A DNA stretch of 31,379 nucleotides from NCBI RefSeq assembly GCF_006345805.1, contig NW_021832342.1, positions 1-31,379 on the forward strand, read 5' to 3'. The stretch's first letter is position 1, and the number at the start of each line of letters is the position of its first letter. A program made the translations under genes and the position numbers. This DNA is from Octopus sinensis (Eukaryota). Below are positions 6,680 to 31,379 of this stretch, piece by piece. The notes beneath the pieces were generated by a model. It was not told the origin of the DNA, ran no database searches, and worked only from the letters and a program-made list of their open reading frames with translations.

Positions 6680-7013
6680 ATTTGTATTTTTTTTTTTTAC
6701 ATTTCCATATGTATATATATATATATATATATATATATATCAACAATTGAGGGTAAAATTAATTAATTAATCAATTTCACCAAGTGTTCAGTATGTAAAA
6801 GGACCATTTAAGGTGAATTCAAAATATTACATTATATAATTAGGGCTTAGTAAAATAAATTACTTTGCTACATACTGAACTTAGTAGAAATAGCAGCCAA
6901 AAAAAATTTTCTTAGCATTTCTACTACTTAAAGAAAATTTCTCTCAGATAACGTTTACTCCAGACAGCTCACGAAGGTTTGGAGGTAAATACAGAAAAAT
7001 ATCACAAGTACAT

Positions 7014-7088
7014 AGATCGTTTGAGTACGTCAGCGTTTCAAGATTAGCCAAATAAAATCAGCATTTCTTTCGTCAGCTCAAAATTTCT
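7014..7088 (-). ncRNA. Type I hammerhead ribozyme (array 1, copy 1)
   Basis: Minus strand: AGA AAT TTTGAG CTGACGA AAGA AAT GCTGA TTTTAT TTGGC TAA TCTT GAAA CG CTGA CGT A CTCAAA CGA TCT. Stem I TTTGAG/CTCAAA, stem II AAGA/TCTT, stem III ACG/CGT, GUA cleavage triplet (H17 = 7026). Confidence 0.88.
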
Positions 7089-7576
7089 TAATTTGTATTT
7101 GGAAACACTAAAAAGAAGGAACTTTACCTATCAGCGAACTTGTCGCTTCAGATGAACCACTCCAACTAACAGTGTCAACAAATTCAAAATGCGCAGGCGT
7201 AAATTTCTGCACTCCCCTTCCACCCACGTGGTCTATCTAGCAAACACTATATTTTAACCGCGAGAACCGAGGCAGTATGACCGAGAGAAATGAATTATAA
7301 TATCAACAATTGAGGGTAAAATTAATTAATTAATCAATTTCACCAAGTGTTCAGTATGTAAAAGGACCATTTAAGGTGAATTCAAAATATTACATTATAT
7401 AATTAGGGCTTAGTAAAATAAATTACTTTGCCACATACTGAACTTAGTAGAAATAGCAGCCAAAAAAAATTTTCTTAGCATTTCTACTACTTAAAGAAAA
7501 TTTCTCTCAGATAATGTTTACTCCAGACAGCTCACGAAGGTTTGGAGGTAAATACAGAAAAATATCACAAGTACCT

Positions 7577-7638
7577 AGATCGTTTGAGTACGTCAACGTT
7601 TCAAGATTAGCCAAATAAAATCAGCATTTCTTTCGTCA
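7577..7638 (-). ncRNA. Truncated hammerhead (array 1, copy 2)
   Basis: Same motif, but the array breaks at U4: C3 and the 5' stem I strand are missing. Confidence 0.75.
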
Positions 7639-8112
7639 TACATGTATGTATGTATATATGTAACCGAACCCTAATTATTGTTAAAGATAACACATACATG
7701 GAACAGCATTTTTTATTACACAAGGTTACAGCAAATATTCAATAAATTCGATAGGGTTCGGTTATACACATACTTACACGCGTACGTACGTGCATGCGTA
7801 TGTACGTGCGTACGTACGTGCGTGCGTACGTGCGGGCGGTGCGTGCGTGCGTGCGTGCGTGCGTGCGTGCGTGCGTGCGTGCGTGCGTGCGTGCGTGCGT
7901 GCGTGCGTGCGTGCGTACGTATGTATGTATGTATGTATGTATACAGGTTAACATGCATTTTGTCGCCGCAAAAAGAAAAAGGAAATATATATTGTCGTGA
8001 AAAATTGCTGAAAAATTAATGTGAATTACGATAGAAGCCGGAAGTGATGACGCTGGCTAAACGAATGTATAGAAGGTACGTATGTTAAATATAACATGAA
8101 CACTTGATATAT

Positions 8113-9015
8113 ATAATGAAATTATTGTATACAGTGCTCAGGTGCACCACAACTTGTCAGAAAGTGCATATAAAGTACATGCAGTAATGTAGAAATGTCT
8201 GGAAAGTGAACATGCTTGTGTGTGTATGGAGGGGAGAAAATCAAGTGTGGTGTTGGCGAATCTCAGGAAGCATGGAAGTTTTGAAGGATGCAGTGCTCCG
8301 ACAACTAACAACCGATGCCGGCAGTTTGTTCCACGCTTCAGCAACTCTCAGCGTGAAAAAATGGAGAGCTGTGCTGTTTTCTGACTTTGTAAATATGTCC
8401 ACGGGTGTTAGATGGGTGGAGTTTGAAGAGGTGCTCAGAGTTATTGTTTGTGCGATGGTTGATAATGTTATGGGTGTCTGCCAAGTCAGCTGCCAGACGT
8501 CGGAGTTTCAATGTGTCCATGCCCAGGGAAGTAAGGCGTTCAGGATATGGCAAATGCCTGATGGAGGGTATTCTTTTGGTTGCACGTCGCTGAACAGCTT
8601 CCAGACGATTGATGTCCTGGGCAAGATAGGGGTTCCAGACCGGTGATGCAAATTCCAGGTGAGGTCTTACCATAGCTATATAAAGCCGCAGATAGATAGC
8701 CGGAGAGCGGCTCACAAAGGATTTGGTGAGTGATGCCAAGACACCCTCAGCCTTCTAGACAATTTTAGTGATGTGTTTTGTCCAACGCAAATCACTGTCG
8801 ACAATAACACCCAGGTCACGTTCACTTGAAGACTTTTTGAGACTAGTGTTGTGGAGAGAGTAGGTGGACGCCGGGTTTCTCCTCCCAAAATGCATGGTGG
8901 TACATTTGTCCACAGCCAGCTTGAGTTGCCAGTCCTTGATCCACTGCTGCATTGTGTCCAGGTCTGCTTGCAATAGAGATCCATAGTGTACAGGATTTGA
9001 CCTCTTTATTTCGAG
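8113..9015 (-). mobile_element. 5'-truncated CR1-clade LINE (RT C-terminus and 3' UTR)
   Basis: ORFs 8755-9030 and 8338-8739: LQADLDTMQQWIKDWQLKL..KC..MHFG..N...ERDLGVIVD and LYIAMVRPHLEFASPVWNPY...LEAVQRRATK...YPERL..LG..TL..RRL, typical CR1/L2 RT thumb motifs. Absent from copies A, C and D. Confidence 0.92.
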
Positions 9016-9403
9016 ATAAGATGAAAACAATCATATTTACGTGGAAGTAACAGTCACTGATGCACGAAATGAGATTTGTGAACAGTTTTCCACGATTTCT
9101 AAATTTGTTTCGCAACACATTCTTATGAAGATATGATTTAAATAAATCGTCGCTAATCCCATATTGTCGCCTGAGTTTCTTCATTGCGGGAATCCATCGC
9201 CCATGTAGAATTTGTGAAAGGATACTGTCATCGTTTGAATCAACAAAATTGAGCGCATGGTCGACAACTTCATGAGTGTAGAAGTTGTCTAGACCCACAT
9301 ATGAAGCCTACCCATGGGATATCAAAAGCATTCCTGACAATATCCAATGCCCGATAAAGGTCCAAAATGTTTCGTGCGTACGATGGCAGATGGAGTTCTT
9401 TAT

Positions 9404-9682
9404 CTATCTCTATCTATCCGCTCAGTCGAAGTCGACTCTCTCCTACTCGATTGATCAGTGTCCTCTAGATAGTTCATATCAGATTGGCTATGTCCATTCC
9501 GGTATCACTTTTGATGGTGTCAAGCCAGCGGGTTCTTGCTGGGCCTCTTCCTCTCTTGCCACTGACCATTCCGAGCATGATGTCCTTCTCCAGGGATTTT
9601 CTCCGCATAATATGACCAAAATATGTCAATCTATGCTTTCTGATCCTAGCTTCTAGCGACATTTTCAGCCTGATCTGCTTAA
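9404..9682 (-). mobile_element. RTE-clade LINE 3' end with 11-bp TSD
   Basis: ORF 9474-9662 RKHRLTYFGHIMRRKSLEKDIMLGMVSGKRGRGPARTRWLDTIKSD resembles the RTE/BovB C-terminus. TSD GAGTTCTTTAT at 9393-9403 and 9683-9693. Confidence 0.9.
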
Positions 9683-9858
9683 GAGTTCTTTATACAAGTT
9701 TGATATATCACTGTCGTCACATCCGATTCTCTAGACAATTAACAATCACTTTTTTATAATAGTAAACTGTATATGATAACTTTGTATACCTAACATAAAC
9801 TTGGAATACGAATATCAAAATGTGCAAAAAAGGGAGTAAAAAAATAAAAAGCATCAAA

Positions 9859-29330: not shown

Positions 29331-29509
29331 TAAACATGATTTGAAAGTAAACAACTACAAACAAAAACGATACAAAGCAGCTGTATGCTAATTTTTTATA
29401 TTATTATTATTATTATTCTGATAAGATTCGTGAAATTCCCTAGATGTCACGAGACTGTAAACACCGGAAGCATATCGCACCGGAAGTTTATCCACCGCTT
29501 GCCGGTGCC

Positions 29510-29640
29510 ATCGTCATCATTCGTCATCAGCCTCGTCATCGACCTTATCATCATCACCACCATCATCATCATCATCATCATCATCATCATCATCATCATT
29601 ATCATCATCATCGTCACCATGACCACCACCACCACCATAC
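29510..29640. repeat. (ATC)n/(ACC)n trinucleotide repeat
   Basis: Directly visible; it produces the poly-His, poly-Ile and poly-Met ORF artefacts. Confidence 0.92.
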
Positions 29641-29967
29641 TAAGAATATCTCCATGGTGTGATAATAAGTATTATTTCAAATGTTATGATTGAATAATCC
29701 TTACCATAGTTCGGTGTATATATATATATATATATATTATAGATATATATATATATATATTATATATTATTATATATTATATATATATTATATATTAAGG
29801 GCTTAGTAAAATAAATTACTTTGCCACATACTGAACTCATTAGAAATAGCAGCTAAAGAAATTTCTTAGCTATTTCTAATACTTAAAGAAGATCTCTCTC
29901 AGATAGTGTTTGCTCAAACCAACTCACAAAAGGTATGGGGGAAAAAACGTTTTAAAAATCAAGTGCA

Positions 29968-30033
29968 AAGGTTATTTGAGAACGTACGTTCTAGATAGTC
30001 AATCGACATTTCTTTCGTCAGCTCAGAACTCCT
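29968..30033 (-). ncRNA. Hammerhead (array 3, copy 1; GAAA reduced to GAA)
   Basis: CTGACGA core is present but one core A is missing (real mutation or homopolymer error). GUU site, H17 = 29981. Confidence 0.65.
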
Positions 30034-30517
30034 GATTCGGATTTGGGAACACTGAAAGTGGGAGCATACACCTTTTGGCTTCTTTCACCTCTAGAATTCT
30101 GCTCGAAATACAAAAGTGCTATCAAATTCAAAATATGCAAGCGAAGAATTTCTGCTTCCCCTTTCCACCAGCGTGGGTTAAAATTGACAAACACTATGTT
30201 TTATCGGTAAAACCGAAGCATTAAACAGAGAGAAATGAATTATAATTAAAACAATTGAGGGTAAAATTAATTAATTATTAATCAATTTCACCAAGTATTC
30301 AGTATGTAAAGGGACCATTTAGGCGAATTCAAAATATACATTATATATAAGGGCTTAGTAAAATAAATTACTTGCCACATACTGAACTCATTAGAAATAG
30401 CAGCTAAAGTAATTTCTTTAGCTATTTCTAATACTTAAAGAAGATCTCTCTCAGATAGTGTTTGCTCAAACCAACTCACAAAGGGATGGGGGAAAAAAAA
30501 TTAAAAAATCAAGTGCA

Positions 30518-30586
30518 AAGGTTATTTGAGAACGTACGTTTCTAGATTAGTCAAAATCCATTTCTTTCGTCAGCTCAGAACTCCTT
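30518..30586 (-). ncRNA. Type I hammerhead ribozyme (array 3, copy 2)
   Basis: AAGG AGTTC TGAG CTGACGA AAGA...TCTA GAAA C GTAC GT T CTCA AATAA CCTT. GUU site, H17 = 30531. The 10.1-11.1 position is A-A. Confidence 0.82.
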
Positions 30587-31071
30587 GATTCGGATTTGGG
30601 AACACTGAAAGTGGGAGGCATACCCTTTTGGCTTCTTATCACCTCTAGAATTCTGCTCGAACTAAAAGTGCTATCAAATTCAAAATATGCAAGCGAAGAA
30701 TTTCTGCTCTCCCCTTTCCACCAGCGGGGTTAAAATTGACAAACACTATGTTTTATCGGTAAAACCGAAGCATTAAACAGAGAGAAATGAATTATAATTT
30801 CAACAATTGAGGGTAAAATAATAATTAATATTAATCAATTTCACCAAGTATTCAGTATGTAAAGGGACCATTTTAGGCGATTCAAAATATTACATTATAT
30901 ATAAGGGCTTAGTAAAATAAATTACTTTGCCACATACTGAACTCATTAGATAGCAGCTAAGAAATTTCTTTAGCTATTTCTAATACTTAAAGAAGATCTC
31001 TCTCAGATAGTGTTTGCTCAAACCAACTCACAAAAGGTATGGGGGAAAAAAACATTAAAAAATCAAGTGCA

Positions 31072-31140
31072 AAGGTTATTGAGAACGTACGTTTCTAGAT
31101 TAGTCAAATCGACATTTCTTTCGTCAGCTCAGAACTCCTT
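31072..31140 (-). ncRNA. Type I hammerhead ribozyme (array 3, copy 3)
   Basis: Stem II AAGA AAT GTCG ATT TGAC TAA TCTA. H17 = 31084. Confidence 0.82.
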
Positions 31141-31379
31141 GATTCGGATTTGGGAACACTGAAAGTGGAGCATACCCTTTTGGCTTCTTATCACCTCTAG
31201 AATTCTGCTCGAACTAAAAGTGCTATCAAATTCAAAATATGCAAGCGAAGAATTTCTGCTCTCCCCTTTCCACAAGCGTGGGTTAAAATTGACAAACACT
31301 ATGTTTTATCGGTAAAACCGAAGCATTAAACAGAGAGAAATGAATTATATATATATATATATTATATATATATATATAT

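Follow-up and report, generated by a model that had tools for sequence, protein, structure and literature searches.

Tandem ~550-nt repeats with type I hammerhead motifs in Octopus sinensis probably represent a cephalopod family of non-LTR retrozymes

The 31,379-nt stretch of Octopus sinensis DNA analysed here (positions 1 to 31,379 of contig NW_021832342.1, RefSeq assembly GCF_006345805.1; hereafter the window) contains three tandem arrays of a 548–563-nt unit that carries a hammerhead ribozyme motif on the minus strand. A sequence-only reading of the window had described three minus-strand arrays of a ~550-nt unit and proposed that they belong to a non-coding retrozyme family. We confirmed the arrays by a repeat search and by BLAST, using one unit per array as query against the whole window, and found them at separate sites, together with a fourth, old fragment that the earlier reading lacks. 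Tandem Repeats Finder (TRF) was silent on the arrays because its maximum period, 500, is shorter than the unit. The copies are listed here with their ends in unit positions:

6732–7638, minus strand: array 1 (subfamily A1), 1.6 units of 563 nt; 5' end at unit position 514, 3' end at unit position 293.
19929–21714, minus strand: forward copies of array 2 (subfamily A2), 3.2 units of 548–553 nt with a mutual identity of 98%; 5' end at unit position 50, 3' end at ~185–197, in a TA-rich segment.
21712–21976, plus strand: inverted, 5'-truncated partial copy (unit positions 20–285), hammerhead-free; it meets array 2 head-to-head at that array's 5' end and passes into (TA)n on its outer side.
27026–27206, minus strand: fourth, old and degenerate partial copy (unit positions ~114–289), 67–69% identity by BLAST.
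29779–31349, minus strand: array 3 (subfamily A3), 2.8 units of 550–553 nt with a mutual identity of 94–97%; 5' end at unit position 288, 3' end at ~197, both in (TA)n.

Units of the three subfamilies can be aligned over their full length, and their GC content is 0.34. Between subfamilies the consensus identity is 73% (A1 and A2), 74% (A1 and A3) or 83% (A2 and A3), whereas copies within an array are 94–99% identical by BLAST. This gap fits separate insertions of the three arrays.

Eight copies of the hammerhead motif were located in the arrays, all on the minus strand:

7011–7091, minus strand: complete A1 hammerhead, predicted cleavage 3' of 7026; stem I of 6 bp plus distal AGA/UCU; stem II AAGA/UCUU plus a distal stem; helix III ACG[CUGA]CGU.
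7589–7638, minus strand: truncated A1 hammerhead at the 5' edge of array 1; begins (U)GACGAAAG inside CUGANGA and lacks the 5' strand of stem I and the start of the core.
20099–20172, minus strand: A2 hammerhead, predicted cleavage 3' of 20114; G·U at 10.1–11.1; helix III AC[GUAC]GU within the ACGUACGU palindrome.
20647–20721, minus strand: A2 hammerhead, predicted cleavage 3' of 20662.
21200–21274, minus strand: A2 hammerhead, predicted cleavage 3' of 21215.
29966–30036, minus strand: broken A3 hammerhead; GAAC replaces GAAAC, with deletions in stem II.
30516–30588, minus strand: A3 hammerhead, predicted cleavage 3' of 30531; core complete, distal stem II lost through a 2-nt deletion.
31070–31142, minus strand: A3 hammerhead, predicted cleavage 3' of 31084; H17 is U, with an A·A mismatch at 10.1–11.1.

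Position H17, 3' of which cleavage is predicted, falls at 7589 and 7026 in A1, at 21215, 20662 and 20114 in A2, and at 31084, 30531 and ~29981 in A3. The H17-to-H17 spacings are accordingly 563 nt (A1), 553 and 548 nt (A2), and 553 and 550 nt (A3), and both the sites and the spacings are those proposed earlier. Written 5' to 3' with the helix III loop in brackets and the predicted cut as an arrow, the motifs read UUUGAG-CUGACGA-AAGA…UCUU-GAAA-CG[CUGA]CG-UA↓CUCAAA in A1, UCUGAG-CUGAUGA-GAGA…UCUU-GAAA-C[GUAC]G-UA↓CUCAAA in A2 and CUGACGA-AAGA…UCUA-GAAA-C[GUAC]G-UU↓CUCAA in A3. The invariant core (C3 U4 G5 A6 N7 G8 A9, G12 A13 A14, the A15.1-U16.1 pair and an H17 other than G) is complete in six of the eight copies. 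The earlier statement that all units carry the core thus stands for these six; the copy at 7589 is truncated, the one at ~29981 is broken, and the inverted copy has no hammerhead at all. The variation reported at tolerated positions proved real throughout: C and U occur at N7, A and U at H17, the distal stem I pairs switch from AGG/CCU to AGA/UCU, and the loop of A2 and A3 is GUAC. Helix III is indeed short (2–3 bp) and palindromic.

Such a motif is rarely met by chance. The bare pattern CTGANGA-N8-38-GAAA occurred seven times in the window against 1.22 expected, and six of the seven matches lay inside the arrays. A fuller type I descriptor was then applied, which required 4 bp or more in stem I, the core, 3 bp in stem II, GAAA, A15.1-U16.1 and one additional pair, 2–8 nt in the helix III loop and an H17 other than G. 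It matched six times, always on the minus strand, once per unit and only within arrays, where 1500 dinucleotide-preserving shuffles gave an expectation of 0.0027 matches per window, or ~5e-5 per unit. On the plus strand of the window neither the Rfam search nor the descriptor scan found a ribozyme.

Comparison of the subfamilies shows where the motif has been free to change. All eleven invariant core bases are unchanged across subfamilies that are only 73–83% identical: the hammerhead region has ~17 variable columns, none of which falls on a core base (p ~0.01 by a hypergeometric estimate), and substitutions are restricted to N7, 10.1/11.1, the loops, H17 and the stems. When the structure was written down and imposed on the copies, 90.9% of the stem cells were paired, compared with 29–44% when the 3' partners were slid by 1–3 columns. 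Compensatory double changes were seen in distal stem I (G-C to A-U, as part of the switch from AGG/CCU to AGA/UCU) and in distal stem II (C-G, U-A, U·G). Stem I has 6 bp and stem II 4 bp before the internal loops, and helix III has 2–3 bp with a palindromic loop; such stem lengths and a short palindromic helix III make up the canonical geometry of metazoan type I hammerheads (PMC4209133). As to a possible tertiary contact between the loops of helices I and II, the internal loops lie at the canonical distances (6 bp along helix I, 4 bp along helix II), a match in spacing. The arrangement picked up by the descriptor scan, with helix I open and helices II and III closed, is that of a type I hammerhead, and stems I and II were recovered by minimum free energy (MFE) folding and by RNAalifold.

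The hammerhead is embedded in a unit RNA that is itself strongly folded, with 61–65% of its bases paired. Circular MFE z-scores were -6.8 (A1), -6.1 (A2) and -2.0 (A3) on the minus strand and -2.0, -4.1 and -0.9 on the plus strand. From five full units RNAalifold derived a consensus of 160 pairs, hammerhead stems I and II included, with 94.3% of cells paired. Two-sided changes were found in 13 of these pairs, against 5.4 ± 1.7 in shuffles (none of 500 reached 13) and 2–4 with slid partners. The fourth copy, at 27026–27206, adds an independent compensatory change from A-U to G-C in the arms of a long hairpin, TTCGGTATG...CATACCGAA. We also considered a strand-neutral DNA palindrome as the source of the pairing. 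The helices contain 98 G·U cells and only 13 A·C cells, and the same helices are worth -95.7 kcal/mol as minus-strand RNA and -54.3 kcal/mol as plus-strand RNA, while the best consensus of the plus strand itself has only 121 pairs and -81.3 kcal/mol. This asymmetry rules out the palindrome and argues for selection on RNA, and the compensatory changes point to selection acting in the polarity of the ribozyme. The best-conserved part of the unit is the domain at positions ~100–300, with a three-way identity of 0.8–0.97:

20915–21115, minus strand: the conserved domain (unit positions ~100–300) in one A2 unit.

It forms three conserved hairpins, with compensatory changes in the two variable ones, and it ends at two TA-rich segments, where the 3' ends of the arrays fall. 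Altogether, these results show that each ~550-nt minus-strand unit encodes a type I hammerhead within a branched, highly paired RNA whose helices have been kept by compensatory changes.

We then looked at the junctions between the arrays and their surroundings. The 3' ends of arrays 2 and 3 share one unit position, ~197, with the sequence ACUAAGCCCUU|(U/A)AUAUAAU. Three further ends fall in a second TA-rich segment, at ~290: those of array 1 (3'), array 3 (5') and the inverted copy (outer end). All six ends pass directly into a TA-type repeat, which is (TA)n at five of them and a TA/CATA repeat at the sixth; the flanking simple repeats are:

6707–6740, no strand: (AT)17 microsatellite adjoining the 3' end of array 1.
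19925–19940, no strand: (TA)n adjoining the 3' end of array 2.
21977–21990, no strand: (TA)n adjoining the outer end of the inverted copy.
29717–29795, no strand: (TA)n adjoining the 3' end of array 3.
31346–31379, no strand: (TA)n adjoining the 5' end of array 3 and continuing to the end of the window.

Where array 2 meets the inverted copy head-to-head, its forward copies begin at unit position 50 (21714) and the inverted copy at unit position 20 (21712). The hallmarks of insertion by Penelope-like elements (PLEs), according to Craig et al. (PMC8557442), include partial tandems, heavy truncation at the 5' side, a 5'-truncated copy placed in reverse at the 5' end, and targeting of microsatellites, and (TA)n is the preferred target of the Naiad PLEs (PMC8557442). 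Of the four array 5' ends, three are no more than 50 nt away from the predicted cut (positions 20 and 50 in array 2, 514 in array 1), the remaining one, of array 3, being at 288. The cases are too few for more than a hint that the RNA template may have ended at the hammerhead cut. The head-to-head junction also accounts for two weak Rfam miRNA matches, MIR173 and mir-3145, at 21675–21780, which we reject as artefacts of the perfect hairpin formed there.

The unit appears to be non-coding. No Pfam or homologue coding signal was found in it, and no search was aimed specifically at primer-binding-site (PBS) or polypurine-tract (PPT) motifs. Pfam and homologue searches likewise found no PLE open reading frame (ORF) in the window, which upholds the earlier claim of a non-coding family unaccompanied by a PLE reverse transcriptase (RT)/GIY-YIG ORF. 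The sole reverse-transcriptase signal is a LINE-type remnant at ~8338–9030 on the minus strand, a decayed C-terminal piece with a weak RVT_1 match that is 91–92% identical to predicted 'jockey-like' proteins of Octopus vulgaris. Exact look-ups of two window ORFs gave no identical record. Further copies were sought by several routes. A spurious ORF of the unit, used as a query of the protein database, recovered none; the unit was not found in 41 kb of O. vulgaris DNA around LINE copies; and two conserved blocks and the hammerhead region, taken as exact patterns, had 0 matches in metagenome, viral and GTDB contigs, collections that are essentially free of cephalopods. Strings of the unit sequence were also not found in the searchable literature or in supplements of the O. 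vulgaris repeat paper (PMC13282606). That paper reports 31 recently active PLE families in O. vulgaris and is silent on hammerheads and retrozymes.

Several other features were noted in the window. At 2159–18300 lie 17 clustered tRNA-Leu genes of 82–84 nt each (anticodon AAG in 12 and UAG in 5; 14 minus-strand and 3 plus-strand genes). The region that holds them is made up of duplicated modules (repeat families D3, D4, D6, D9, D13, D15 and D18–D20). Array 1 lies ~60 nt from one of the plus-strand tRNA genes, at 6598–6679. Within the tRNA region, (GCGT)n and (GTAT)n tetranucleotide microsatellites recur at a matching place from one duplicated module to the next (992–1111, 7780–7920, 14447–14541 and 16726–16864). 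A 156-nt tandem repeat (2.0–2.3 copies), SINE-like in appearance, lies beside tRNA genes at 5652–5967 and 12694–13044; related pieces are at 11359–11511 and 15075–15227, and its identity to O. vulgaris loci is 80–91%. A short interspersed repeat at 27734–28229, probably an abundant octopus SINE, has many copies (81–92% identity) in two O. vulgaris loci. Interspersed repeats of the window are shared with the O. vulgaris assembly GCA_951406725.2 at 85–92% identity, and this sharing and the match of the LINE remnant to O. vulgaris proteins mark the host as an octopus. Finally, a TG/GT-rich tandem repeat of 142 nt at 26353–26652 (2.1 copies, 92% matches) is unrelated to the hammerhead family.

Head-to-tail tandem units with a type I hammerhead in each are a trait of retrozymes, and they are what we find here. 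Metazoan non-LTR (long terminal repeat) retrozymes are tandem, low in GC at less than 45–50%, non-coding and devoid of LTRs, PBS and PPT, with a type I hammerhead and a self-paired RNA (PMC7229834, PMC7761336). We therefore consider it likely that the arrays arose by insertion of a retroelement of this type, non-autonomous and non-coding, into the octopus genome. The family is probably a cephalopod one within the known retrozyme class, and not a new kind of system, though marked by PLE-type junctions of unusual clarity and by a conserved structured domain outside the ribozyme; the searchable literature reports no cephalopod retrozyme or hammerhead. A 2026 preprint uses as its working criterion of an 'active' retrozyme at least two consecutive complete hammerheads with an MFE below -5 kcal/mol. 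Applied with our own descriptor, not with the rnabob model of the preprint, it singles out three such units in A2 and two in A3, with MFEs of -10 to -14 kcal/mol; A1 falls short, having one complete motif only.

The closest comparison is with the retrozymes described by Cervera & de la Pena 2020 (PMC7229834), such as those of Mytilus galloprovincialis, of 350–390 bp. Shared features are head-to-tail tandems, low GC, lack of coding capacity, one type I hammerhead per unit, a predicted self-paired RNA and a mollusc host that carries PLEs. The retrozymes of that study differ from the octopus unit in length (170–400 nt, against ~550 nt), in having a simple hairpin loop on stem II where the octopus motif has an internal loop and a distal stem, and at 10.1–11.1, which is not G-C in octopus; moreover, the octopus family is known from sequence alone. 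Length itself does not set the unit apart: the remark of the sequence-only reading that these units are longer than described animal retrozymes is outdated, since the 2026 preprint gives consensus lengths of 51–972 bp for animal retrozymes, with a mean of 650 bp in ray-finned fishes. The axolotl hammerhead HHR_Amex2 (PMC7229834) shares a weak base of helix II (U·U there, G·U or A·A here) and an expected dimeric action in tandem transcripts. It comes from a vertebrate host and a 350-bp unit with no sequence relationship, and its activity was measured, whereas that of the octopus motif is predicted. PLEs, in their pseudo-LTR (pLTR) hammerheads and their insertions (PMC4209133, PMC8557442), share the palindromic helix III, partial tandems, the inverted 5'-truncated copy and insertion into microsatellites, whereas the octopus unit has no RT/GIY-YIG ORF. 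Their minimal hammerheads mostly lack helix III and have a helix II of 6–8 bp with a bulged base (PMC4209133), unlike the octopus motif, and the Naiad PLEs are without canonical hammerheads and are said to be old remnants in cephalopods (PMC8557442).

The classical hammerhead satellites, such as newt satellite 2 and Schistosoma Sm-alpha (see also the review PMC7761336), are likewise genomic tandem repeats that give rise to self-cleaving RNAs with a weak helix III, and differ from the octopus arrays in having shorter units, G10.1-C11.1, defined loop-loop contacts and recognition by Rfam.

Several observations weigh against this assignment and have to be set beside it. The check by the Rfam Hammerhead_1 model that had been proposed was negative: the Rfam hammerhead models had no match at the gathering score in the window, nor at E <= 10 in a 3-kb slice and two ~100-nt slices, and the four Rfam searches returned only tRNAs and low-complexity miRNA/snoRNA noise. 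The 10.1-11.1 pair, highly conserved as G10.1-C11.1 in canonical hammerheads (PMC4209133), is never G-C here; A1 has A-U, A2 has G·U and A3 has A·A. The axolotl HHR_Amex2 offers a precedent, cleaving as a dimer despite a U·U mismatch there (PMC7229834). The core was expected to be better conserved than its flanks if the ribozyme is real; this holds for the eleven core bases, which carry no substitution, and not for the hammerhead region as a whole, whose three-way identity of 0.6–0.77 compares with 0.66 for the whole unit and 0.8–0.97 at positions 130–300, which counts in part against the family under the refuting condition set in the sequence-only reading. Two of the eight copies are broken or truncated. 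In addition, the lineages compared number three or four and all come from one 31-kb window, with no further copy in the collections searched. Finally, (TA)n is very common across the window, so that TA repeats flanking the arrays are weaker evidence than they would be elsewhere.

Folding energies divide the subfamilies further. The A1 hammerhead fold, at -11.3 kcal/mol, is practically the MFE (-11.5 kcal/mol). The other folds lie above their MFEs, at -7.2 against -10.2 kcal/mol for A2, -7.2 against -11.6 for the A3 copy at 31084 and -1.1 against -14.1 for the A3 copy at 30531, and the monomer MFE structures of A2 and A3 lack helix III, all of which also weighs against the assignment to a retrozyme. 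The ACGUACGU palindrome of A2 and A3 forms no stable hairpin and has a self-duplex energy of -9.8 kcal/mol, so dimeric action of these subfamilies in tandem transcripts would fit. This estimate draws on the self-duplex energy of helix III alone; when two 90-nt hammerhead segments were paired by RNAcofold, trivial symmetric duplexes resulted that told nothing further. Judged by these models, A1 looks like a monomer-competent motif, A2 like a dimer-type one, and A3 weak or decaying.

Following the published retrozyme model, multimeric minus-strand transcripts of the arrays would cut themselves 3' of H17. A1 may be able to do so as a single motif, because its 3-bp helix III is capped by a tetraloop and its hammerhead structure matches the MFE in energy, while A2 and A3 would more likely cut as dimers through the ACGUACGU palindrome. 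The same model would have the monomers, with 5'-OH and 2',3'-cyclic-phosphate termini, circularised by a host RNA ligase, and the RNA reverse-transcribed and integrated in trans by a PLE. The junctions suggest that (TA)n microsatellites would be the targets, that cDNA could be primed by microhomology at either TA-rich segment (positions ~197 or ~290), and that several units in tandem would result, the 5' end of which may in some cases carry an inverted 5'-truncated copy. The conserved hairpin domain at ~100–300, just upstream of the putative priming sites, would be a likely signal for the mobilising enzyme. We tentatively offer a more specific version, which we hold to be rather doubtful as it stands: a (TA)n-targeting enzyme of the Penelope type would prime by microhomology at the fixed segments ~197/~290, the ~200-nt hairpin domain upstream would be its recognition module, and the 5' ends of array 2 at positions 20 and 50 would be footprints of cleavage in vivo. 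If true, the insertion sites of this family would, for the first time in a retrozyme, reveal the mobilising machinery.

How well does the assignment to a retrozyme withstand other explanations? The arrays could be an ordinary satellite whose copies multiplied as DNA, through unequal crossing-over or segmental duplication, and in which the hammerhead is a decayed, non-cleaving and immobile relic of a retrozyme or PLE tail. That other parts of the unit are better conserved than the hammerhead would agree with this, as would its weak or mismatched 10.1–11.1, the negative Rfam result, the several copies that are broken, truncated or thermodynamically poor, and a surrounding region itself made of duplicated modules. 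Yet the subfamilies sit at separate sites with their own (TA)n boundaries, not in a single continuous array, and are 94–99% identical within arrays against 73–83% between them, which fits separate insertions. The inverted 5'-truncated copy is a hallmark of retro-insertion (PMC8557442), no core base is changed in the six complete copies, and the compensatory changes speak for selection on RNA in one polarity. We therefore judge a satellite origin improbable, though it is the strongest of the competing explanations.

Less probable again is that the arrays are tandem pseudo-LTR or tail fragments of an autonomous PLE that lost its RT/GIY-YIG body by 5' truncation, in which case there would be no independent family. 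PLE insertions are heavily 5'-truncated, occur in partial tandem or inverted form, and have hammerheads within their pLTRs (PMC4209133, PMC8557442), and retrozymes are sister to PLE pLTRs (2026 preprint). The boundary between such fragments and a retrozyme is partly a matter of wording. However, complete units, each with a hammerhead, succeed one another head to tail, and none of the three arrays has coding sequence between them; the window holds no remnant of a PLE ORF; and the motif is of the canonical type, whereas PLE minimal hammerheads usually lack helix III and have a helix II of 6–8 bp (PMC4209133). A chance match in an AT-rich repeat, for which the negative Rfam result and the shortness of the core boxes might be cited, can practically be set aside, given an expectation of ~5e-5 descriptor matches per unit, the retention of the motif in three diverged subfamilies with compensatory changes in its stems, and the independent recovery of stems I and II by MFE folding and RNAalifold.

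If the octopus arrays are indeed retrozymes, as we think likely, they bear on three questions. Curated hammerhead models miss real-looking variants that combine a weak base of helix II with an extended helix II. With regard to mobilisation, a 2020 review noted that animal retrozymes show no motif revealing the mobilising element (PMC7761336), and the idea that PLEs mobilise them has so far rested on co-occurrence and on the phylogeny of terminal regions (2026 preprint); the (TA)n targets, the fixed TA-rich 3' ends, the inverted 5'-truncated copy and the conserved hairpin domain lend it support at the level of sequence. Lastly, retrozymes give rise to small circular RNAs that are abundant in amphibians, mussels and corals; with a cephalopod family the known range of hosts would be wider, and ~550-nt circular RNAs would be a candidate class in octopus transcriptomes.

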